From assembly GCA_965112735.1 (NCBI GenBank), contig OZ218954.1:2666001-2730000 (forward strand): 64,000 bases of DNA, given 5' to 3'. Of the stretch, positions 27,207 to 41,097 are shown piece by piece; the stretch's first letter is position 1, and each line of letters begins with the position of its first letter. The notes under the pieces were generated by a model. It was given only the letters and a program-made list of their open reading frames with translations, was not told the DNA's origin and ran no database searches. The DNA is from Phaeosaccion multiseriatum (taxonomy: Eukaryota > Protista > Ochrophyta, other classes). The translations under genes were made by a program, and so were the position numbers.

Positions 27207-29790
27207 ATGGCTCCTCCCTCGGCGTCCCCTCCAACGTGCCCTTTGCTTCTGCGCTCGCTGTGTATTCCATTGTCGGTGTCTGCAGTAGCAGCCGGGCAAG
27301 TTGGTCGAGAGGATGTTGACGGGGGCTTCGAGCAATGGGGATGGCTGGCGATAGCAAAGAGTGCGGCGTTGGAGGTGTGGCTGTGCCGCTCGTCCACTGA
27401 CTCACACCAGCAGGAGCAGGGAGACTATTCGCCGGAGGATGGAGACGAGGAGAAAGAGGGGGGCGCTCTTACTCTCGAGGCGTCGGTCGACTTTGAGTGC
27501 AATGTTGTGGGACTCGCCGCAGTGCCCCTTCCTCCTCCAGTGGATGGCACTGGCAAAGACGAAAAGGGCGAGGATTTGCTCTTTCTCCTATCTGGCGATG
27601 GAAGCTTCTCGCTACTGCGGCTCTCGGGACAGACCAGAGAAGAGTGCGGGCAGCTGGGCGAAAAGGCTGACGAGGCGAGTCCGGGCTGCAAAATTGCGTT
27701 GCACTGGCTCCTGACAGGCACCCTCGCGCCTCCTCCACCCCCGCATACTACTGCAAGGATGGTTAGAGGGCAGGTCAGGCTATCCGTCACCAGTGTGCAA
27801 GCAGAAGAAGAGGGTGAGGGAACCTGCATCGTCGCAGTCGCGGCATCCCTGTGGGAAGGAATTTTGACTACTCTTATTCTCTATCAAGAGGATGGACGAT
27901 GGACGGGGCAACCCCCCCGCAGCAGTAGCTGCACACTGCTCTCGCTAGCCGGCCTGACAGGTCTACAACAACCCGTCCCCACCCCCACCCCAGCAATGGC
28001 CTCAGCGGTAGGGGGGGGCTCTGAGGTAGGTAGGCCATATGGGGCGAGGGGGCGTGCTCCCAGGGGCTGTAGCTCTGGGCGTGGCTGCTCCACTCTGCAT
28101 GCAAGTCTGAATCTGACGCGTGGGGATGCCGTCCCCCGCCCCCTGTCTGGGGGATCGAATGTGTTGACAGGGAGGTGCACGTTCACGTAGCAAGCGCTCT
28201 GCTCACCGCCTTTTGCGCCTGTCCCTCTTTGCACCTCTCACCCTCATTCAAACCTTGTGCCTCTTCCTTTTTCATGCGACTAGGCTCCGCTCACGGCTAT
28301 CGATATCTGCTTTCTGCACGGAAGGGGCAGCCAGACTGTGTCGGGGGAACCGCTGCTTGCTGTGCTGCTCGCAGATCCCAGCGCCCTCCACGTGCGTCGC
28401 CTGCACCCCATACACCTGCACTGCATCAGCATCGACGTGGAGAGCGGGTCAGTCGGGGCGGTCTGCCGGGGCACAGGGCACTCGCCTGGGCGGGGGAGGC
28501 GAGACAGCGAGAGAGGAGGGTAGTGGCAAGCGAGCCTGGCGTTGCAATTGTCCCCCTCTTTTCACTCCGCTTTGACCTACTCTCCCTGATTGATCCTCCC
28601 TCTGGCTGCCCCCCCAGCGGCTGTCTATCGTGCGTGTGGCGTGTGGAGCACTTGCACCCCGGGACCCGAATGGCAGCCATGGAGGGAGGTGCCTTGCTGC
28701 TGGCATGCCCCGGGGGGCTAGCCGTGTACAGATTCGACGGCTGCGTAGCTAAAGTCGACTTCTCGGCCCCTTGCGAGGGAGGTGGGGTGCAGTCGTCTCT
28801 GCAGGTGCGGATGTTGGTGATATCGATCGGCTCCGGATTCGACATCTGTGGCTTGTGGTCTCGTATGATGACACTGGTACTCTGACGCCTCCCTCCCCAA
28901 CCCATCCCCCAGCCCATTACAAGCATGATGGCGTTTGGCGCTCGAAGACACGGGCAGCAGCGGTTCCTGCTCGCGGACAGTGGAGGAGCCCTGCACTGCT
29001 GCCTAGTACAAGTCCAAGGCGGCCCAGGCGGAGAGGGGAGCGCCATTCAATGTCGGAGGGTTGCGGTGCGTGGGTATCCCTCGAAGGAGGACGGTGATAA
29101 AGAAGCGGTGCTGCCAACGGTGAGTGATGTGATGACGGGAAGGAAGTTGTTGCGAAGCCCCGAGCGCCGTGCCCCAGCTTGCGGAGAGACCAAAACTAAA
29201 AAGACCCGCCCACTGCTGACTGGCACTCTCGCGCCATGCAGGTCACGTGGCTCATCGGAGTGGGGGCTCGAACTCGAACCCCAACACGAGACAGCTTCAT
29301 CTTCGCCGCTTCGCCCTCGGCCCGCTCTCAGCTGCTGCGGGTGGACGAGGATGCGAGGAAGGGGCGGGGCTTGGCGACTGGCGACGACCTTCGCGTGTTG
29401 GTTGTAGATAAGGCCGCTGCAGACACCTTGGGGCCTGTGATGGACTTGCTCGCGTTGGAGGAGGAGAGGGTCGCTTCGAGCAGCCCTGTCGGCTTCGGGG
29501 AGAGCACAGAGCAGCTCGAGGCCCGCGAGGCTATCAGGACCAAGGCTGAAAACAATGACGGAGACGAAGACGAAGGCCAGAACGGGGTGCAGGGAAGCCT
29601 CGGGCTAGTCATGGAGGAGGGGGATGCGGGACCGCGGCTCGTGCTGGCGACAGGTCGCCACCAGGTGAGGCTCTGGAGGTGAGGTGTGAGGCACACACAT
29701 GCGGCGGGGTGACGCCTCAGATGGACATCTCTTAACCTGCGCCCCTCTTTCACACACTGCACCTCTCTGACTTACTATTCCACTCTGGTC

Positions 29791-29826
<36 letters not shown>

Positions 29827-32800
29827 GTTTATGTGTACGTGTGCATGCGTGTGTGGCGAAGGACGGCGCCCTGTGCGTGGTGGAGGAGGGGCACTCGCTG
29901 CACACCTCTGCACAGGGAGATTCCGGCCTGCCCCTCGGTGTATTCATGTGGGCTGTGCCGCTCTTCCGAGCCACAAAGGAGAGGGGCAAGCACAAGCACA
30001 AGGACAAGGACAAAGACAAGGACAAGAGCCAGCAGCAGCAGCAGCAGCAGCACTTGCTCGTGTTTGCGGACCGGCTGCGAGACACCACCCTCACCATGAC
30101 GTGGTCTGCAGAGGAAGGAGCCACCCCTGCGCAGGAGCGGGATGAGAAGGCAGGGGGTGAAGCAGGCGCCCCCTTCTGGCCGGTGCCGTCCACGGCAGCC
30201 GCGCTCTTTGTGGGCGCATTGAGCGGACGGGAGCATGACTACATTGTGCAGGTAGGTGCTTTAGAGCTTGCCCACCGGCTTCTCGGTCGGGCCCCTAAGC
30301 TGCGCTGAGCTGTGCTGAGCTGTGCTGAGCTGTGCTCGCATTCCTCCTGGCCTAGTGCCGTGTGCTTTCCCCACAAATCTAGAGCCCGGACACGCCCGCA
30401 ACTGCTCGTAGAATGTGAAAGTGACTGACTCCCAAAAGTGCCCGCCAGTATTGCCTCACGTCTTGTGCTCGTACATCCCTCTAAAGGTGACGAAGACAAG
30501 CGTGTTCCTCGTGGCCAGCGCGCCGCCTGCTGCCCCCACTCTGGCCTCTCGGTGGGACCTTTCCAGTGCGGAACAACAACATTGCCGAACCGGAGCGGGG
30601 GACGAAGGAGTGTGTGGCGGCGGGTGTGACGTTAGAAATGGCACACACTCTCACTCTCCAACGTCCCTCTCCGATGCCCATAACCACATCCAGCACGCGG
30701 CTGTGAGCGGCTCTTGGGTAGTGCTGGCTGCAGGGCAGAGCATCGTCCTCCTCCACGCCACCCCCGACGGGCGAGAGGGAGAGGCGAACGGCAGAGGCAG
30801 CGTTGGCGGTGTTGGCGGTGTTGGCGGTGTTGGCGGTGGTGGCGGTGGTGGCGGTGGTGGCGGTTTTGGCGGTGTTGGCGGTATTGGCGGTTTTGGCGCC
30901 CCCCCGTCCCTTGCGAGACTCCGTCAAGTGGGGCAGACTCTTCGTCCTTGCCGAGAGGGCGCGTCAGTGTCAGTGTCAGGACTGGCGCTGTCGTTGGTGT
31001 GTGGGTCGTCGTCATCACGCCCTGCACACACGACGGAGGCCTCTGTGGGGTTGTTGGTGGCGATGGCGTTCTGGGAGTCCAATCGCATTGTCGTATATCG
31101 GGCAGCAGGGGAAGGCTTTGAGCGCAAGACCGTACTGGAGGTGGAGCTGCCTGGAGGGTACAGCGTGGTCACCTCTCTGGTGTTCTTGCCACCGCCCATC
31201 GCAGCAAGAGAGAGCGGGACAGTCACCCTGGCTGCTGGTTTGGGGGATGGACGCGTGTTGGTAATACTTTGCTCGCACAAACAAGACGCAGGCGGGGCGG
31301 GGGGGGGCTGCTTGGAGTTGCGCAAACTGTGGCCTTTCAAGGTGCGTTTTCCCCTTCTTCTCCTCCCTCCCCTCGCCTGCAGCGCATTCACATCTTTCTC
31401 CCTTCGACCTATGCCATGAAATAGAGAGGCTGTGACAGCCCTCACTTGCGTACTCGCTCACTCTTCTCCCTGTGTGCCGCCCTGTTCACGACACACCACC
31501 ATACCACAGGTTGGGAGAGAGCCCGTATCACTCACCGTGGCGGATCACCATCACGATCAAGAGGTTGAGACTGCCGCAGGAGGAGCAGGAGTAGCAGGAG
31601 TCGGGCCCAGCAAGGGACCCACCAAGGAGGCAGAGGCCAGGCCTTTTGTGATCGCCAACAGCAACAGCGATGCGATCATTCGTCTCGTGCGACGCTCGAC
31701 CGCCGCAGAGTGGAGCGTGACGTGCACCCGGCTGTGGAATGCGAGCACGCAGCGACGGCGGTCCATGGCTGCAATGAGGGGCAGCAGTCAGCTTGTGTGG
31801 CTGTCTGAGGGCACCCAAGCAGGAGACGGGTGCGTGTGAGTGCGTGTGAGTGCGTGTGAGTGCGAGTGCGTTTGAGTGCGTTTGAGTGCGTGTGAGGGCG
31901 TGTGAGGGCGTGTGTGAGTGCGTGTGGTGTGTGTGAGTGCGTGTGAGTGCATTTGAGTGCGTGAATGCAGCACACCAGACGAGCGAGGAGAGGAATGAAT
32001 CGAATTGCCCACACCACGGCAAAGCAGGCGCTGTTGACACATGTCGTGAATCTCATTCCAATGGCTGCCGCCGGCGAATATGCCTCGTTTGTGTCTCATC
32101 ACGCACGCCACCATTTCACCCTCACTCCCCCTCACCCTCACTCCCCCTCACCCTCATCCTCACTCACCCTCACCCTCACCCTCACCCTCACCCTTGCCCT
32201 CATCCCCTCAGAGCCGAAGATGGGACGTCTACCCTACCCCAGAGCTCCCCCCAGGCTCGGCTCAACTTGAACTTCGGAAGCATCACATGGGAGAAAGCGG
32301 GGCGGTGGCGGCGCAAGAGCGTGGGCAGGAGCCCCCTGTCGCTCTGTTCGCTGCCCGGCTGTGGCTGCGTGGCTGCAGTGCTGCAAGGTCGGACCGGGGA
32401 CACGCAGCTGGGCCTCTTTCAGGTGGAGTCACATGGGCAGGCAGCAGGCATATGGGCATATGGGCAGGCGGTAGCACAGGAGAGGGCAGCTCGGAGAGGG
32501 GGGGGCGCACCACGCCCTCCTCCGCCTCTTTGAGTGCCGCGCCGCAGACCACTTAAGCACTGATTGAGTGTGTGTGCGTGTGCGTGTGTGTATGTGTGTG
32601 CGTGTGTGTGTATGTATATATGTATATATGTTTGTGTGCTTGTGTGGCTTCGCCTCGCTGCCACCCCCCCTCCCCTCGCAGGCGGACAATCTCGAAGACT
32701 TGTGGCGTGGTCGGTGAGCGCAGAAAAGAAGGAGGACAAAAGCATTTGCAGGCCACAGAGAGCCCCCCCCCCTCCTGTCGATTCGACTCCACACCTAACA

Positions 32801-35414
32801 CGCATCCCACCCACGTGTCTCACAACCCGTCGTCGTAACCTCTACCACTCGTCCTTAGGGTCGGCACGGCGCGCACGACCATCAGCTCCATCTGCCGAAT
32901 ACAGGCCGCCCCCGAGCTCCTGACCACCGCCAGTCGGACTGCAGCAGGGGTCCAGGCTACGGCAGCTAGAGGAAGAGCACCTAAGAAGAGTGGGAGGATG
33001 CCCAAGCGCTCGCAAGGCAACTCGGCTGGCGAGCTACTTGCCGTCGCCAGCTGTGAAAGACAGACCTCCAACCCCTCCAATCCGCTGGCAACAATGGCCG
33101 GAGGAGCTCCTCCCGCCCCGCTGTCGTCTGTGGCAGTGTACGAGGTGACCACCACGACATCAGTGTCTGTGTCGTCAGGAGGAGGAGGAGGAGGAGGAGG
33201 AGGAGGAGGAGGAGGAGGAGGAGGAGGAGGAGGAGGAGGAGGAGGAGGAGGAGGAGGAGGAGGAGGAGGAGGAGGAAGGTGCGAGAGGACTCTCCAGCCC
33301 TGCGGCGCCGTGAGCCACATCGAAGGAAGTATCTGCAGGTGAGTAAGTACCTTCTTCTCGGCACTCGGCTGCGGGGATCGGCTTGTACGTTGTCAAAGAG
33401 TAGCGCACTCACCCACTAACGCACACACGCACACACGCACACACGCACTCGCACACGCGGGCCCCTTTCTCCCCTTTTGCATGGCACACACGCAGCATAG
33501 CCCCTCTGCGGGAGTCACTCATCGCCGCCGCCAACGACTGCACGGTGCTCGTCCTCGGCTGGCGGAGGGCTCCCAACGCTCAGCAGGTGAGAGTGAGAGG
33601 AGGAGGAGGGGGAGGGGGGGTTTATTAGAATTTTCCTTAGAGGCTCAGTTTGAAGCGGGATGGGTGTGAGTATGTTCCGAGTACAAGCCTCCCCTTCTCT
33701 TTCCCTGGACTTGTGGCATGCCTCCACTCTCGTTCATGCTCTTTTCATCAATATATCCCTCCTCTACGTCGCAGCAGCCAGATGAAACCGTTGCAACCGC
33801 CGAAGGCTTTGAGCTTTGCATCAAGACGAGCCGCCCCACCCCGTCCAATGTGAGTGCCAGTGAGGAGGCAGGAGAAGGTCCATTGAAATGGAAGCGCGCA
33901 CTGCCCTGCGCTGGTGTCCACGTGTCAACATGCCCTCTCCCCCCCCCTTCATTGTGTGCAACCCCTCCTCTCCCCTCTCTCTCCTCCTCTCCCCCCCTCC
34001 CTCTCTCCCCCTCCCTCCCTCCCCTCCCTCTCCCCCTCTCCCCCTCCCTCTCTCCCTCCCTCCCTCCCTCCCTCCCTCCCTCCCTCCCTCCCTCCCTCCC
34101 TCCCTCCCTCCCTCCCTCCCTCCCTCCCTCCCTCCCTCCCTCCCTCCCTCCCTCCCTCCCTCCCTCCCTCCCTCCCTCCCTCCCTCCCTCCCTCCCTCCC
34201 TCCCTCCCTCCCTCCCTCCCTCCCTCCCTCCCTCCCTCCCTCCCCCCCTCCCCTCCTCCTCCATCTTAGGGCTGCATCACAGCGCTGGCGACGAGCGGGG
34301 GAGTCGTTGCCGTGGCCGTCTTGCTGCACTCCGTTTGCGTGTACATACACAGCTCAAACGAAGACGATGAGGGCAGGGACAGTAACCACACCCTCAGCCT
34401 GTTCGCTCAGGTGGGGAGGCGAGAGTGTGCCACAGAGAGCAAGGGGAAGAGGAGGAGCATGAGGATGAACATGATGAGGATCCATCCTTCCTTTCCTGCT
34501 CTGGTCTTTGCTTCTCACAGCTCCTTGTCTCACCCCCTCCCCTTTCTCTTCGCACATCGTACGTGCACAGCACTCGTCTGGGCGCGTGATGACATCGTCG
34601 TTGTTGGTGCTGCTCCCCCCCCCGGGAGAGAGCGGGAGTGAGGGCGGTGCCCTCCGCGTAGTGGTGAAGGATCAGAGCAGTGGAGTCGTCGCCGTGTTGC
34701 AAGAGGGCCTTCGGGTAGAGAGCGACAGCGCCGGACAGAACCCCGTGGAGCTCGTCATCGGGTGCGTATTCAGTCTGTCTGTCAGTCAGTCAGTCAGTCA
34801 GTCAGTCAGTCAGTCAGTCAGTCAGTCAGTCAGTCAGTCAATTCATCAGCCAATCACTCAACCTCTGAAAGAGAGTGGGTGGAGCCTGTACCCGAGTGTA
34901 CCTGTGGCATGCCTTACTCACCACCAACCCACCCACCGCGGCCCCTCCCTTGCTTGGCGACAGGTCTCTGTGGCGAGCTCAAGAGCCCCTCAGCTGCGTG
35001 GCTGCGGGGCCCACAAGGTCAAGGACAAGGACAAGGAGAAGGAGGGGGCGCGATGCTTACCCTCCCTTCATCGCTGCCTCGGCGACGGGAGCCCTCGTGG
35101 AGGCGACGGTTCTATCCAAGGACTCGTACCACAAGTTGGTTCTCCGGCAGGACAAGTTACTCCGGCACCTCCGGCAGCAGTCGCATGCACGTGCCTCGCA
35201 TGATGAGACCGCTGCTCAGTCTCTGTCTCTGCACGCCCCTGGCCTTGCCCCTATCCCTGTTATTGCCCCCGTTATTGCCCCCGTTAATGCCCGTGTTAAT
35301 GCCCCTGTTAATGCTGGCGCCGAGCTGCTGCCGCCCCTCTACGGGTGGGAAAGCGACATGGGGCAGTGCATCAATGGAGACTTCCTGGCACTGGCGGAGG
35401 AAGACTCAGACTGA
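27207..35414 (+). CDS. Divergent DDB1/RSE1/CPSF1-family triple beta-propeller protein (DDB1-like), many exons
   Basis: LAIAKSAALEVW, EDLLFLL, RFLLADSGGALH, TLGPVMDL, LVLATGRHQ|DGALCVVEEG, LAAGLGDGRV, ITALATSGGVVAVAVLLHSV and C-terminal CINGDFL align in order with remembered DDB1 motifs. Confidence 0.75.
33178..33276 (+). repeat. (GGA)33 coding repeat giving poly-Gly in a DDB1-like exon
   Basis: 33 perfect GGA codons in frame with AVSHIEGSIC. Confidence 0.85.
34050..34250. repeat. (CCCT)n microsatellite, intronic; absent from the duplicate copy near 37630
   Basis: Direct reading. Confidence 0.95.
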
Positions 35415-35689
35415 GTCACCGTGTGCTACGCCCTCCTACCGGCGAGGAGGGGAACCGTGTATATATATGTAAATACTTCCCTCAGGGGCAGAAGGAAGTA
35501 CTGGACTGGCTGGGGTCCTTGTTCCCCAACTGTAAGACTGCAGTGACAGATGGCAGAGTTGCGGTGGGATCCCCTCTGCATGCTTTACCGAGAGATTCAG
35601 CGATAAGCAAGGCGACAGTTCCACGACCATTCCACTCCCTCCCTCGACCTCTCTCGATCCGAGTCGCAATGTCGCAATGTGCACTTAAA

Positions 35690-35991
35690 TCGACCCCTGA
35701 CGCGCTATCGCCCACATTCTCGATAGCGGATAGCGGATAGCGGATCGGCTGGCGCCGCCGAGAGCGTCGGCCCCTGACATGGTTCTGAGAACCAGGAACC
35801 AACCTTGGCCCTCATTGTCGACTCATTGACCTCATCATTGCCTTATTAGATGGCTCTCCCCCAGAACCTGGAACCTGCCTGGCCGGCTGGCGCCGGCCAG
35901 AAGCAGGAACCAGGGTCGCCTCAGAACCATGTCAGGGTCCGAATAGCGGATAGCACACCCCCACAACCCCCCCCCCCCAAAGCCGGCTTAC
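35690..35991. mobile_element. Short GCTAT-rich element, copy B, MITE-like with an internal 18-bp inverted repeat
   Basis: CCCTGACATGGTTCTGAG (35772-35789) and CTCAGAACCATGTCAGGG (35920-35937); GATAGCG x3; termini shared with 20571-20831; absent from the paralogous position at 38438. Confidence 0.5.
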
Positions 35992-36160
35992 TGTTCCCGG
36001 CCGTATCACTCTGTTATTATGTCCCGGGGGGCACCCCTTCCCCCCCGGGGGGCAAAGCTCATTCTCAATCCTCTCGTGCCACTCCATCCACTCCTCAAAA
36101 AATCTTTCTTGTAGTTGCCCAGCCCTGGCAGCCACTGCAAACCCCGCCACTGAAGATACG

Positions 36161-37450
36161 ATGAAGACTTCCAGCATGGCCCGCCGCATTGATTCGTGGG
36201 TGAAGCCTTGCCTCGTGGCTGCCCTGTGTCTGGTGGCCTCTTCATGGCCTGCGGCAGGTTTCGCCGATCAGCCGGAATTTGTGTTGCCTGAAGACTCCGG
36301 GGCACGCCCAAGCTCTGCTGGTCCTGCTGGTGGACGAATGGTTCCATCGAGCGCTCGGTACCATGCTGGGGGGGGGTTGCACGCTGCTGCCCTTGCTCCA
36401 GCGGCCGGTACCGGCGGTGGGGCCGCGGGAAAGGCACGTGTGGAGGCGCTGGCGTCTACTGTTGATGCTGCCGCTGCCACCGCCGCAAGGAGGGCCTTGC
36501 AGGAGGAAGAGTTCACTAGTCACGATCATGATATGGACGGCTACAACGACCACACGCAGGATGGGGGCGATGAGCAAGAGGACCACGAGGACGAGGACCA
36601 CGAGGACGAGGACCACGAGGACGAGGACCACGAGGACGAGGAGCACGATTCCGACGAGTTCACTAGTCACGATCATGATCAGGACGGCTACAACGACCAC
36701 ACGCAGGATGGGTTCACTAGTCAAGATCATGATCAGGATGGGGTCGATGAGGACGAGGGGCACGAGGAAGAGGAGCACGATTCCGACGAGTTCACTAGTC
36801 ACGATCATGATATGGACGGCTACAACGACCACACGCAGGATGGGGGCGATGAGCACGAGGACCACGAGGACGAGGAGCACGATTCCGACGAGTTCACCAG
36901 CCACGATCATGATCAGGACGGTTACAACGACCACACGCAGGATGGGTTCACTAGTCAAGATCATGATCAGGATGGGGTCGATGAGGACGAAGGGCACGAG
37001 GAAGAGGAGCACGATTCTGACGAGTTCACTAGTCACGATCATGATATGGACGGCTACAACGACCACACGCAGGATGGGGGCGATGAGCACGAGGACCACG
37101 AGGACGAGGACCACGAGGACGAGGACCACGATTCGGACGAGTTCACCAGCCACGATCACGATATGGACGGCTACAACGATCACACGCAGGATGGGGGCGA
37201 TGAGCACGAGGACCACGATCACGAGGACCATGAGGACGAGGACCACGAGGACGAGGACCACGAGGACGAGGAGAATGGGGTCGAGGAGAATGGGGACGGG
37301 GAGCGCGGAGACGGGGACGAGGAGGTCGCGGCTGAGGAATTATCCAATCAGGCCTCCCCTTCTCTTTCCCCAGACTTGTGGCGTGCCTCCACCCTCTTTA
37401 ATGTCGTTTTCATCAACACATGCCTCCTCTTTGCCGCGGCAGCTAGATGA
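36161..37450 (+). CDS. Secreted His/Asp/Glu-rich repeat protein 1 (429 aa), hydrophobic C-terminal tail
   Basis: Signal peptide CLVAALCLVASSWPAAG; propeptide ending RRALQ; 6 FTSHDHD(M/Q)DGYNDHTQ repeats plus 2 variants; EDHEDE spacers. Confidence 0.8.
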   Translation: MKTSSMARRIDSWVKPCLVAALCLVASSWPAAGFADQPEFVLPEDSGARPSSAGPAGGRMVPSSARYHAGGGLHAAALAPAAGTGGGAAGKARVEALASTVDAAAATAARRALQEEEFTSHDHDMDGYNDHTQDGGDEQEDHEDEDHEDEDHEDEDHEDEEHDSDEFTSHDHDQDGYNDHTQDGFTSQDHDQDGVDEDEGHEEEEHDSDEFTSHDHDMDGYNDHTQDGGDEHEDHEDEEHDSDEFTSHDHDQDGYNDHTQDGFTSQDHDQDGVDEDEGHEEEEHDSDEFTSHDHDMDGYNDHTQDGGDEHEDHEDEDHEDEDHDSDEFTSHDHDMDGYNDHTQDGGDEHEDHDHEDHEDEDHEDEDHEDEENGVEENGDGERGDGDEEVAAEELSNQASPSLSPDLWRASTLFNVVFINTCLLFAAAAR

Positions 37451-38437
37451 AACCGCTGCAACCGCCGCAGACTTTGAGCTGTGCATCAAGACGAGCCGCC
37501 GACCCCATCCAATGTGAGTGCCGGTGAGGAGGTAGGAGGAGGTCCATTGAAATGGAAGCGCGCACTGCCCTGCGCTGGTGTCCACGTGTCAACATGCCCT
37601 CTTTCCCCCCCATCATTGCGTGTAACCCCTTCCTCTCCCCCTCCCCTCCTCCTCCATCTTAGGGCTGCATCACAGCGCTGGCGACGAGCGGGGGGGTCGT
37701 TGCGGTCACTGTCTTGCTGCACTCCTTGTGCGTGTACATACACAGCTCAAATGAAGACGATGAGGGCAGCGACGGTAACCACACCCTCAGCCTGTTTGCT
37801 CAGGTGGGGAGGCGAGAGTGTGCCACAGAGAGCAAGGGGAAGAGGAGGAGCAGGAGGATGAACATGATGAGGATCCATCCTTCCTTTCCTGCTCTGGTCT
37901 TTGCTTCTCACAGCCCCTTGTCTCACCCCCTCCCCTTTCTCTTCGCACATCGCACGTGCACAGCACTCGTCTGGGCGCGTGATGACATCGTCGTTGTTGG
38001 TGCTGCTTCCCCTCCTAGGAGAGAGCGGGAGTGAGGGCGACGCCCTCCATGTAGTTGTGAAGGATCAGAGCCGTGGAGTCCCTTCATCGCTGCCTCGGCG
38101 ACGGGAGGTCATCCGGCTCAGTGTTGCAAGAAAGAATGTGTTTTGAGGTTCATTGTTACGCACTTGGGCATGGAAGCACTCTGGCACTGGCGGAAGACTC
38201 AGACTGACTCACCATGTGCTACGCCCTCCTACCGGCGAGCAGGGGAACCCTGTAATAAAAAAAAAACATAAAAAAATACTCGTCGCCTCAGGGACAAAAG
38301 GAAGTACTGGGGTTTTCATTCCCCCACTGTAAGAATGCAGAGACTCAAGTTTAACCGAGAGATTCAAAGATAAGGCGACCGTTTCACGACCATTCCACTC
38401 CTCGACCTCTCTCGATCTCTCGATCCGAGTCGCAATG
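37352..38437 (+). pseudogene. Degenerate duplicate of the DDB1-like 3' region and its downstream flank (source 33688-35672)
   Basis: Colinear similarity to 33688-34690 and about 35385-35672, with a 1-nt indel near 37500 and large internal deletions near 38080-38180. Confidence 0.85.
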
Positions 38438-38695
38438 TGCCCTCCCGCCAAAAAGGGAAGACCTCACCTACTCATCTGGATTTGGTCACTTGAAGAGAAA
38501 AGGAATAATAAAAGGAATGGTCGACGAGGGGGCGGACTCTCACGTACGCGAGGGTCATGGCGCGAGGGGAGAAATTTGAGTGCGCGCGCTATGCCGGTCT
38601 CCCGGGGGGCAGAGGGTTCGGAGTGGCACGTGAGCCTCAAATCTTTATTATTTGCCCCCCACAAACTGAACCCTCAGTCCTACAGCAGAGAAAAA

Positions 38696-41097
38696 ATGAC
38701 TACCAGCAGCAGCAGTATGGCCCGCGGCATGGCTCGCCTGGTGAAGCCTTGCCTCGTGGCTGCCCTGTGTCTGGTGGCTTCTTCATCGCCTGCGGCAGGT
38801 TTCGTCGATCAGCCGGAATTCTTATTGCCTGCTGAAGATTTCGGGGCACGCCCAAGCTCTGCTGGTCCTGCTGGCGGACGAATGGTTCCATCGAGCGCTC
38901 GGTACCATGCTGGGGGGGGGTTGCACGCTGCTGCCCTTGCTCCAGCGGCCGGTACCGCTGGCGGGGCCGCGGGAAAAGCACGTGTGGAGGCGCTGGCGTC
39001 TACTGCTGATGCTGCCGCTGCCACCGCCGCAAGGAGGGCATTGCAGGAGGAAGAGTTCACCAGTCACGATCATGATCAGGACGGCTACAACGACCACACG
39101 CAGGAGCATGAGTCGTCCGACGAGGAGGAGGAGCCCGAGTTCACCAGTCACGATCATGACCAGGACGGCTACAACGACCACACCCAGCATGACTCCTCGG
39201 AGGAGCATGAGTCGTCCGAAGAGGAGCCCGAGTTCACCAGTCACGATCATGACCAGGACGGCTACAACGACCACACGCAGCATGACTCCTCGGAGGAGCA
39301 TGAGTCGTCCGAAGAGGAGCCCGAGTTCACCAGTCACGATCATGACCAGGACGGCTACAACGACCACACCCAGCATGACTCCTCGGAGGAGCATGAGTCG
39401 TCCGAAGAGGAGCCCGAGTTCACCAGTCACGATCATGATCAGGACGGCTACAACGACCACACCCAGCATGACTCCTCGGAGGAGCATGAGTCGTCCGAAG
39501 AGGAGCCCGAGTTCACCAGTCACGATCATGATCAGGACGGCTACAACGACCACACCCAGCATGACTCCTCGGAGGAGCATGAGTCGTCCGAAGAGGAGCC
39601 CGAGTTCACCAGTCACGATCATGATCAGGACGGCTACAACGACCACACCCAGCATGACTCCTCCTCCGAGGACACTACGGTACGTCAAAGGAGTCGAACT
39701 TCAAAGAATTTGTTTTGCTTTTTCGCTTCTCAGCCCCCCCTTCTTTGGCTCACTCCTTGTAAATGCATGCCTGCGCCTTCCCTTCTTAAAATGTCTCTGC
39801 AGGCTCCCCCCACCGCTGCACCCACTGCCCCGCCCACTGCACCACCCACGGCTCCTCCTACGGTGAGTCAAGCAGTCGCCATGTCTTCGCTCAGTCGGTC
39901 AAGAAGCTCATTGGCTCACTCACCCTCTTTTGGTTTCTCTACCCGCCTTCCCTTGTTGCTATCGTGTCGCCGCCGCAGGCTCCCCCCACCGCTGCACCCA
40001 CTGCCCCGCCCACTGCATCACCCACGGCTCCTCCTACGGTGAGTCAAGCAGTCGCTATATATTCGCTCAGTCGGTCAACATGCTCAGTAGTTCACTCACC
40101 CTCTTTTTGTTTCTCTACCCCCCTTCCCTTGTTGTTGTCGTGTCGCCCCAGGCTCCCCCCACCGCTGCACCGGTAGCTACCACGGCCCCTGTGGCCCCCA
40201 TGACCGATGCCCCTGTGGCCCCCATGACCGATGCCCCTGTGGCCCCCATGACCGATGCTCCTGTGGCGCCCATGACCGATGCCCCTGTGGCCCCCATGAC
40301 CGATGCCCCTGTGGCCCCCATGACCGATGCCCCTGTGGCCCCCATGACCGATGCCCCTGTGGCCCCCATGACCGATGCCCCTGTGGCCCCCATGACCGAT
40401 GCTCCTGTGGCGCCCATGACCGATGCCCCTGTGGCCCCCATGACCGATGCCCCTGTGGCCCCCATGACCGAGGCGCCTGTTGCCCCGGATGTGACCCCCG
40501 CGGGAACCACGGCGCCCGTTGCCCCGGATGTGAACCCCGAGGGCGAGTGCATGGTGCCCTCGGCCTGCGCAGCCACTGAGGCCGACATCGAGCAGCTGGC
40601 TCTGTCCCACAAGTGCATCACCGTGGACACCGCCTGCGGTACTGACGATGCGCCCGCCGGCTGCAACTTTTTCGGCCTGGGCCAGGACTGCAGGTGAGGA
40701 TGTGTGGGGCGGGGGTATCATAAAGTAGAGGATTTCGTCCCTATCCTTGGCATTGTCTCATGCTCTTCGTTTTTCGGCTCCTCGTCGTTGCTGTGTTGTT
40801 CATTACCTACTCAGGGCCTGCTACATGTCGTGCGAGGGAGCCATGATGCACCTCGCCGCCTACCCGTCCACGCCGGACTCGGAATTCTTCTTCTGCCCTT
40901 CCACGGGCCTGACCTACGACATGTGCACCGACGAAACCCCCCCCGATGACGCGGGCGATTGTGTGTGCGACGGCTTTGGCGAGTCTTGCTTCATGGACAG
41001 CTCATGTGTGTTGGGTGAACTCGGATGCAACGTCCGCGGCATACTGGCTTGCCGCTTCTGTGGGTTCGGTGTCTACTCCGATATCGCATGCCCTTAG
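38696..41097 (+). CDS. Secreted His/Asp/Glu-rich repeat protein 2 with Pro/Thr/Ala mucin-like stalk and two C-terminal Cys-rich modules; 5 exons (38696-39679, 39803-39862, 39979-40038, 40152-40693, 40815-41097)
   Basis: Signal and propeptide paralogous to 36161; 7 FTSHDHDQDGYNDHTQ repeats (93-bp period for the last six); APPTAAPT exons; 12 APVAPMT(D/E); GCNFFGLGQDCRACY and GCNVRGILACRFCGFG; canonical splice sites in frame. Confidence 0.85.

Follow-up and report, generated by a model that had tools for sequence, protein, structure and literature searches.

An old tandem duplication of ~3.7 kb lies in the window, the 64,000-nucleotide stretch of Phaeosaccion multiseriatum DNA analysed here, and our data support its having created a chimaeric open reading frame (ORF), P1, in which an acidic repeat gene appears to continue into the copied end of an intron. 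We estimate a probability of about 0.6 for the reading we favour as a whole: an old duplication, a neutral intron-derived tail, and a P1 that is live and read through the junction. Under this reading, a single ~3.7-kb tandem duplication had its breakpoints in a putative intron of the source gene and in an exon of a secreted repeat-protein gene. The downstream copies keep the parental arrangement, with the second repeat gene (P2) intact, and the upstream source gene keeps its 3′ exons. P1, the truncated upstream copy, enters the copied end of the intron in frame and reads on for 32 codons to a TGA, which falls in the following copied exon in a frame other than that exon’s own; the source-gene fragment copied behind it is decaying.

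Using a repeat search and self-BLASTN, we identified two units in tandem and in the same orientation. Unit 1 (33684–37348, forward strand, 3,665 bp) contains the source gene’s 3′ end region, the DNA between the genes and P1, the truncated repeat gene, while unit 2 (37349 to ~39656, forward strand, with no placement of its right-hand end possible past 39656) contains a decayed source-gene 3′ part (37349–38438) and the 5′ part of P2. The units are joined by collinear blocks pairing 33684–33989 with 37349–37654 (87.6% over 307 nt, E = 5e-106 by self-BLASTN), 34234–34687 with 37627–38080 (94.3%, gap-free), 35385–35672 with 38181–38438 (~70%, gapped) and 36172–37193 with 38713–39656 (73%). These blocks confirm the proposal of a first-pass annotation that the sequence from 37352 onward duplicates that from 33688 onward, although the true in-frame partner is 33687, one nucleotide away. 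Its further proposal, that a tandem duplication gave rise to a chimaeric ORF, is upheld by the adjacent units, the single new junction and an ORF (36161–37450) that crosses it. The junction (37348/37349) joins the acidic-repeat ORF to the copied pyrimidine-rich 3′ end of a source-gene intron; one breakpoint is in an intron of an RSE1/DDB1/CPSF1-like gene and the other at the 3′ end of the acidic-ectodomain exon of a secreted repeat-protein gene. The outer copies are parental in structure, P2 being intact with five exons and the source gene retaining its own 3′ exons.

The source gene (27207–35414, forward strand; multi-exon, with only its 3′ part modelled) has exons at ~33470–33586 (a), 33775–33849 (b), 34270–34410 (c), 34571–34761 (d) and 34964–35414 (e), all with GT-AG boundaries and compatible phases. 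The whole basis of its DDB1-like family label is one Pfam match, that of the ORF at 30415–31416 to the second beta-propeller domain PF23726 (E = 5.1e-8; score 32.9 bits, cut-off 30). CPSF_A (PF03178) was not detected at this locus, while three other loci in the genome do match it. Exons b, d and e had no Pfam match at E up to 10, the best match of exon e to the three bona fide CPSF_A genes had an E of 0.09, and a homologue search for mapping the exons returned spurious matches only. Where the source gene and its C3 copy differ by exonic indels, most of the lengths are divisible by three (27, 9, 12, 21 and 36). The source intron (33587–33774, forward strand) opens with GTGAGA (donor GT at 33587–33588), is pyrimidine-rich and ends in a CGCAG/CAG tandem acceptor (AGs at 33773–33774 and 33776–33777); read through from the upstream exon, it contains an in-frame TAG. 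On the basis of the GT-AG ends, the pyrimidine tract, the read-through stop and the compatible phases, we infer that the segment from which the tail originates, the last 88 nt of this intron (33687–33774), is intronic.

P1 (36161–37450, forward strand, 429 amino acids, TGA at 37448–37450) begins with a predicted signal peptide (~36161–36259), a hydrophobic stretch (VKPCLVAALCLVASS) after basic residues that is common to paralogs of the ZIP transporter family. An N-domain, His/Asp/Glu-rich repeats (36506–37261), a P1-specific acidic linker (37262–37351) and the tail (37352–37447, forward strand) follow; residues 116–397 are 49% D+E and 15% H. The tail reads ASPSLSPDLWRASTLFNVVFINTCLLFAAAAR before the stop, and of its 32 codons, 29 come from the intron 3′ end and the rest from 9 nt of the exon that follows, out of frame. 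This match to the pyrimidine-rich end of a GT-AG-bounded intron bears out the earlier suggestion that intron DNA was the probable source of the P1 C-terminus, as does P2, which retains the stalk and Cys exons, the suggestion that the tail replaced those domains. The source intron is itself open in the tail’s frame, reading ASPSLSLDLWHASTLVHALFINISLLYVAAAR to the same TGA. Its mean Kyte-Doolittle hydropathy over the best 17-residue window (KD17) is 1.99, compared with 2.04 for the tail, the highest value anywhere in P1 and one reached by only 3.4% of random 20–60-aa read-through tails. In length, the 32-codon read-through is about the chance median (35 codons for random read-through). The tail was hydrophobic at birth because a T/C-rich polypyrimidine tract in that frame gives Leu, Phe, Val, Ile and Ala codons, and it has been open, this long and hydrophobic from the duplication onward.

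The intact paralog P2 (38696–41097, forward strand; 1,929 nt, 642 amino acids) has exons at 38696–39679, 39803–39862, 39979–40038, 40152–40693 and 40815–41097, in frame and with all introns GT-AG, and is laid out as a signal peptide, an N-domain, acidic repeats, a Pro/Thr/Ala stalk and a Cys-rich end. At least 82 matches to the Cys module occur across the genome. The N-terminal module has three paralogs with the Pfam Zip domain (PF02535, E 1e-22 to 4e-25), which in each of them follows the same signal peptide and His-rich repeats. ZIP (SLC39) zinc transporters have His-rich extracellular N-termini, and the signal peptide, N-domain (42–49% identity) and repeats are common to them and to P1 and P2; the repeats DSDEFTSHDHDMDGYNDHTQDGGDEH are identical at the protein level and 90% identical in DNA (ZIP genes at C3:1546.5k and C13:2444–2447k). 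In contrast, the whole transporter domain is missing from P1 and P2, whose exons had no Pfam match and in which the multi-pass Zip domain, with its HNFxDG and HExxxE motifs, is absent. P1 and P2 are ZIP ectodomain-only relatives, not members of the ZIP family, and the ZIP origin of their signal peptide and His/Asp-rich ectodomain is new here, as are two findings set out below, purifying selection on the P1 repeats and the lack of a consensus splice donor before the junction.

A GPI-like or membrane tail on P1 is plausible. In the best GPI-type reading, a candidate omega-site at S401 (S401-L-S403, assigned by eye) is followed by a spacer (P404–T411) and a 17-aa hydrophobic end (L412–A428), then one Arg, at the extreme C-terminus of a protein with a putative signal peptide. 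The genome encodes parts of the GPI transamidase, namely Gpi16/PIG-T (PF04113; 119 and 111 bits, E = 2.5e-33, C16:556.8k) and Peptidase_C13 (PF01650; 145 bits, E = 1e-40, C7). The P1 product would combine a signal peptide, a ZIP-derived His/Asp-rich ectodomain and a GPI-signal-like or single-pass hydrophobic tail, and would have moved from a secreted or wall-bound state, as for P2, to a membrane-tethered one.

An assembly artefact at the junction, whether from uncollapsed haplotypes or a mis-join, is highly improbable, and nothing positive speaks for it. The units diverge by 2–18% depending on the block, are separated by many deletions, some longer than 600 nt, and also differ by a 271-nt microsatellite, a miniature element (MITE) and different repeat arrays. 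The two are not alleles, one being a copy of only part of the other, with rearrangements; the junction sequence (37262–37470) occurs once in the 22-contig, 67-Mb assembly, with matches to its right part confined to the source. We regard it as doubtful, but with more in its favour, that P1 is a dead by-product, never translated, whose ORF and tail survive simply through the rarity of stops in GA/CA-rich repeat DNA. The repeat region has two other long open frames (412 aa, and 339 aa antisense), so the open ORF alone is weak evidence for P1, and P1 had no match in the protein collections or metagenomes searched, whether public protein or transcript-derived. Its promoter is uncertain because the 5′ flank (35673–36160) is not alignable with that of P2 (38441–38695) and carries a MITE-like repeat (35767–35942, unstranded, with 23-nt inverted ends) that sits ~220 bp before the P1 start codon and has no counterpart ahead of P2. 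Candidate places for this repeat number at least 520 genome-wide. Once ZIP outgroups are used for polarisation, the signal-peptide-region changes that fall on the P1 branch look neutral (~5 non-synonymous to 1 synonymous, by eye), and the omega of the tail is not separable from 1. Against this, the P1 repeats are under purifying selection, and in no frame but the correct one, which makes P1 probably a live gene: compared with the ZIP-C3 repeats, omega is 0.15 (P = 0.002) and exceeds 1 in the off frames. Among the P1 units themselves, pN/pS is 0.44 in frame and 1.2–1.6 out of frame (4 synonymous and 0 non-synonymous differences between the units at 36653 and 36887; 5 and 2 between those at 37019 and 37136), although inter-unit conversion can distort such tests. 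The N-domain has an omega of 0.25 between P1 and P2. Finally, P1 held 1.29 kb in frame while the source-gene fragment of the same age in unit 2 lost its first acceptor AG and the counterparts of ~34688–35058 and 35090–35385, and acquired a 1-nt deletion in exon b′ that shifts the frame before the old donor at 37514. The P1 mRNA could be a target of nonsense-mediated decay via old introns kept downstream of its stop.

We infer that the P1 mRNA reads through the junction, because the last 900 nt upstream contain no consensus splice donor; the GTs before the junction are only GTCGAG (37280) and GTCGCG (37325). Alternative splicing, for example from the weak donor at 37325 (GAG|GTCGCG, phase 0) to the AG at 37441–37442, would turn the tail into an intron and give P1 a C-terminus of 24 aa encoded by the copied exon b in that exon’s own frame (LDETAATAADFELCIKTSRRPHPM, with the stop codon at 37515–37517). 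In favour of this, the copy retains the polypyrimidine tract and, of the tandem acceptor, the second AG; the phases are compatible and the frame-3 ORF ends at 37517. We nonetheless consider such splicing unlikely, as the donor lacks the +3 purine and +5 G found in all eight inferred local donors (GT[A/G]NG, including those at 40039 and 40694), the first acceptor AG is lost, and the P1 DNA before the junction shows no homology to the end of P2 exon 1 or to intron 1 (P = 0.28 and 0.8), homology that a hybrid intron would require. Equally improbable is that positive or stabilising selection shaped the tail into a signal for GPI attachment or an anchor in the membrane. The first-pass counts of change do stand: 17 substitutions separate tail and source across 96 indel-free nt, and the next 150 nt have 9 substitutions and one 1-nt indel, a significantly smaller share (Fisher P = 0.005). 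Hydrophobicity, rare among random tails at this level, was held or slightly raised (simulated mean KD17 of 1.51 after 17 random changes against 2.04, P = 0.12), and the GPI transamidase genes are present. However, the suggestion that the tail may be under selection is not supported, given that the stop, length and hydrophobicity were already in the source, that dS (0.35) exceeds dN (0.16; omega 0.47) with the same omega off frame, and that divergence is at the neutral level (17.7% against 16.1% in a 3′UTR/intergenic block and a P1/P2 synonymous divergence of 0.15–0.25). The probability of no stop after 17 random changes is 0.70, and the tail is without an outgroup, the C3 copy beginning at 33834. 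Change in the tail since the duplication appears to be what neutral drift would produce, and the true anomaly is the low divergence downstream of it.

On the favoured reading, P1 is an ordinary example of a known route to new gene ends and not a new class of mechanism. When a tandem duplication in Drosophila has its boundary in coding sequence, the copied 5′ end recruits formerly non-coding DNA as its new 3′ coding end; Rogers et al. (2014) reported 143 and 96 recruitment cases, plus 78 and 38 chimaeras, in two species (PMC4069613). P1 would likewise have recruited non-coding DNA as a 3′ coding end. Unlike those cases, both of its boundaries are in genes yet the recruited part is intron, so that no domain of a second protein was gained; it is also algal and old (~16–18% neutral divergence). 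The Drosophila gene Hun Hunaphu (Arguello et al. 2006, PMC1463047), a partial duplicate that lost its 3′ coding part, continues for ~99 bp (33 aa) in the non-coding DNA beside it, nearly the same length as the 32-residue P1 tail, but its transcript ends were established by RACE and positive selection by population data. According to Vakirlis et al. (2020, PMC7005711), T-rich non-coding DNA tends, when translated, to give transmembrane-like hydrophobic stretches, as with the P1 polypyrimidine tract and its 17-aa hydrophobic end; the segments described there were born as free-standing ORFs, whereas that of P1 was joined to a secreted protein that already existed.

Should P1 be expressed in this way, it would be a clean and fully traceable example from neither animals nor plants, with both parents adjacent for comparison, in which one duplication truncated a secreted protein and supplied both a stop codon and, from the polypyrimidine tract of an intron, a ready-made hydrophobic anchor. 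The His-rich ‘repeat proteins’ of this alga, as cast-off ectodomains of ZIP metal transporters, suggest a hypothesis for this orphan family, namely metal binding at the cell surface. It is conceivable, though we hold it only tentatively and think it rather unlikely, that P1 regained an anchor in one step: its ancestor with P2 would have been a ZIP ectodomain minus the membrane domain, the duplication would have given P1 a hydrophobic GPI or transmembrane tail at its C-terminus from the polypyrimidine tract of an intron, and the product would have been selectively kept as a surface-tethered, His/Asp-rich, metal-binding ‘antenna’ or decoy. The P1 tail occupies the place of transmembrane helix 1 in the ZIP parents.

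The chimaeric ORF P1 (36161-37450; 429 aa) ends in ...EELSNQ/ASPSLSPDLWRASTLFNVVFINTCLLFAAAAR and a stop codon. Its last 32 codons (37352-37447, hereafter the tail) derive from the copied end of a likely intron of an upstream RSE1/DDB1/CPSF1-like gene, the source gene. A repeat search and a self-BLASTN of the window (C5:2666001-2730000, 59% GC; the eukaryote is rich in introns and its assembly has 22 contigs totalling 67 Mb) confirmed the tandem duplication proposed in the first-pass annotation, with unit 1 at 33684-37348 and unit 2 starting at 37349. Collinear blocks pair 33684-33989 with 37349-37654 (87.6%), 34234-34687 with 37627-38080 (94.3%, gapless), the 3'UTR/intergenic stretch 35385-35672 with 38181-38438 (~70% with gaps; mismatches 16.1%) and 36172-37193 with 38713-39656 (73%). 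The in-frame correspondence described for the start of the duplicate exists, but it pairs 33687 with 37352, one base away from the earlier figure. One tandem duplication would give the observed layout A-[U]-[U]-B, where A is the 5' part of the source gene and B the stalk and Cys exons of P2, the intact paralog; the sole new junction is U|U, at 37348/37349.

The junction sequence occurs once in the genome. A simple haplotype artefact is ruled out, because the units differ by unit-specific deletions, a microsatellite and a MITE-like repeat and have diverged by 16-18% in unconstrained blocks. Origin through a hybrid intron or microhomology was likewise rejected: P2 intron 1 matches the junction at 15/16 nt and the source intron at 12/13, but these matches are not significant (P = 0.1-0.28). 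The right-hand breakpoint within P2 could not be placed; the last 155 nt of P1 before the junction are acidic low-complexity, P1-specific sequence, and this DNA gave no alignment with the end of P2 exon 1 or with intron 1 (P = 0.8).

In the source gene, ORF 30415-31416 matches the RSE1/DDB1/CPSF1 second beta-propeller in Pfam (PF23726, E = 5e-8, barely above the cut-off), but the C-terminal CPSF_A domain carried by three other genes of the genome was not found at this locus, and the earlier label 'DDB1-like' is therefore weak. Pfam returned no CPSF_A in 3' exons b, d and e at E values up to 10, exon e had no significant match among PDB sequences, and phmmer and BLASTP comparisons of exon e with the three real CPSF_A genes gave nothing significant. 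Exon mapping by homology was dropped, a 334-aa exon ORF having produced 4 weak spurious matches (bacterial SpaA or Ig repeats) against 1.84 billion representatives. The 3' end was modelled from sequence as exon a (ending at 33586), an intron (33587-33774) and exons b (33775-33849), c (34270-34410), d (34571-34761) and e (34964-35414). Every boundary is GT-AG with compatible phases, and read-through of the intron from exon a leads to TAG. Coding support for exons c-e comes from indels relative to a third partial copy on contig C3, which are multiples of three in 5/8 exonic and 2/9 intronic cases. These sequence features favour the intronic status claimed for 33687-33774, which is likely but not proven.

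Three more distant paralogs share the N-terminal module with P1 and P2: one gene at C3:1546.5k (L008:1032-2777) and two tandem genes at C13:2444-2447k (L007). All three encode ZIP zinc transporters (PF02535, E 1e-22 to 4e-25) in a single exon, with the same putative signal peptide and long extracellular His/Asp/Glu-rich repeats ahead of the transporter domain. The repeats of P1 and of the ZIP gene on C3 share 90% DNA identity, and the proteins are identical over DSDEFTSHDHDMDGYNDHTQDGGDEH. These ZIP genes are the parents of the module; sharing their putative signal peptide and repeats, P1 and P2 are ZIP transporter derivatives that keep the ectodomain only.

The exons of the source gene and of P2 were analysed one by one and, for P2 (38696-41097), only the summed length of its five exons (642 aa) was computed. 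P2 is an intact gene encoding, in order, a putative signal peptide, the N-domain, acidic His-rich repeats, a Pro/Thr/Ala stalk and a Cys-rich end. The latter (40515-41097; ...CNVRGILACRFCGFGVYSDIACP) is one member of a large family, for which a six-frame search of the genome gave at least 82 matches; the module had no match in Pfam, and the best ESM Atlas score, 0.77, came with no name. Two copies of it, at C5:3195271 and C5:3208026, are 96-98% identical and lie on the same contig at a distance of ~490-500 kb.

Several lines of evidence suggest that P1 is a live gene. Its repeats compared with the ZIP gene gave an omega of 0.15 (P = 0.002), while the two off frames gave values above 1, and the N-domain has an omega of 0.25 between P1 and P2. 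Among the repeat units of P1 itself, pN/pS is 0.44 in the reading frame of the ORF but 1.2-1.6 in the other frames; the two cleanest pairs show 4 synonymous vs 0 non-synonymous differences and 5 vs 2 (binomial P ~7e-4 and 2e-3, reckoned from site counts). Since pS in the unit pairs (0.23-0.33) equals or exceeds P1/P2 dS, at least part of the unit divergence arose inside P1 under constraint. Counting against a live gene, changes on the P1 branch in the signal-peptide region look neutral, the repeat region is open in other frames too and the 5' flank is unlike that of P2. Searches of public collections with the N-domain and the tail region, and exact look-ups, returned no relatives or transcripts of P1, and metagenomes gave no match to its protein or to a DNA pattern spanning the junction. 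Overall, we put the probability that P1 is a live gene at roughly 0.7.

Because no consensus splice donor was found in the last 900 nt of the P1 ORF, the transcript is expected by default to continue into the tail. Close to the ORF end, GT occurs only in GTCGAG and GTCGCG, whereas the eight local donors inferred here all read GT[A/G]NG. The tail is somewhat more likely than not to be part of the P1 product.

The first-pass annotation proposed that the tail may be under selection. Its substitution counts held up: the tail has 17 in 96 nt and no indel, and the 150 nt that follow have 9 and one indel of 1 nt (P = 0.005). Selection on the tail, however, is not supported: the source was already open in frame, divergence is at a neutral level and dS exceeds dN. 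Read in the frame of the tail, the source intron is open to the same TGA and gives ASPSLSLDLWHASTLVHALFINISLLYVAAAR. Random read-through within the window typically continues for 35 codons (median; P = 0.53 for 32 or more), and the probability of no stop after 17 random substitutions is 0.70. Because dS (0.35) exceeds dN (0.16) and omega (0.47) is identical to that of an off frame, the extra divergence is not protein-directed. At 17.7%, tail divergence matches the 16.1% of the 3'UTR/intergenic block (Fisher P = 0.75) and also fits P1/P2 synonymous divergence (0.15, or 0.25 in the signal-peptide part). Mean Kyte-Doolittle hydropathy in the best 17-residue window is 1.99 in the source intron reading and 2.04 in the present tail. 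Two features stay unusual: such hydrophobicity is reached by only 3.4% of random tails, and it was retained better than simulated (P = 0.12). This property is inherited from the polypyrimidine tract and perhaps mildly maintained. The tail and linker were also compared with TM1 of the ZIP proteins and the juxtamembrane linker before it, but homology was rejected: the BLASTP alignment is collinear, but shuffling gave P = 0.03-0.36, and we treat the collinearity with TM1 as positional coincidence.

Behind a putative signal peptide, the P1 ectodomain is His/Asp-rich (49% D+E, 15% H), and the very C-terminus of the protein consists of 17 hydrophobic residues followed by a single Arg. This arrangement appears to have the general form of a GPI-attachment signal, in which S401-L-S403 would be the candidate omega-site, followed by a spacer of 8 aa and the hydrophobic end; alternatively, it would be a minimal type-I anchor. 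If P1 is GPI-processed, the peptide ASTLFNVVFINTCLLFAAAAR would be lost. The genome encodes Gpi16 and a C13 peptidase.

In Drosophila, gene-truncating tandem duplications have recruited non-coding DNA as new 3' coding ends by the hundred (PMC4069613), and Hun Hunaphu took up ~99 bp of such sequence, adding 33 aa (PMC1463047); membrane-like segments are known to arise from T-rich non-coding DNA (PMC7005711). The P1 event is of this kind, found here in an alga; the donor was a likely intron and the recipient a ZIP ectodomain.

Unit 2 carries a decaying fragment of the source gene. A 1-nt deletion in its copied exon b' shifts the frame, which then meets a TGA where the old donor was; the tandem acceptor has lost its first AG, and two deletions took most of exons d and e. 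After the duplication, unit 1 gained a 271-nt CCCT expansion and, ahead of the P1 ATG, a MITE-like repeat. The (CCCT)n microsatellite (33940-34250, source-gene intron 2; +271 nt vs unit 2) and a (TCAG)n run (34770-34840, intron 4) vary in length among the three copies. The MITE-like element (35767-35942; ~176 bp, with 23-nt inverted ends, TCGGCCCCTGACATGGTTCTGAG) lies ~220 bp before the start of the P1 ORF and is missing from the P2 flank. Candidate places for it number at least 520 genome-wide, many 91-97% identical. The word TCGACCCCTG is present at 35690-35699, in the upstream region of P1.

The third partial copy, a dispersed one of the source-gene 3' end (C3:334508-335816, minus strand; L006:2509-3817), corresponds to window positions 33834-35470, with ~8-9% mismatch divergence from copy 1. 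Its start lies 16 nt upstream of the donor of exon b and is preceded by a short new stretch that opens with an ATG. It keeps its introns and is therefore a DNA-level copy. One donor is lost (GT to GG) and indels of 4, 7 and 1 nt break the frame; it is probably a relic. Intron 34411-34570, with copies at 37804-37963 and C3:335276-335439, folds over its full length into a single long hairpin with a purine and a pyrimidine arm (-64 kcal/mol). Its reading as an introner or a known RNA was rejected on the basis of three copies only in the genome, an Rfam E of ~0.6, a z of only -0.74 and no covariation; it may represent either a gene-conversion tract or an intronic locus for a hairpin RNA. No other part of the duplicated DNA is as conserved as this intron, with a divergence of 1.9% between units and ~5% to the C3 copy, below that of the flanking exons. 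It lies within 33783-34687, whose low divergence between units (5-8% overall) is a real oddity that gene conversion or an unknown constraint would explain.
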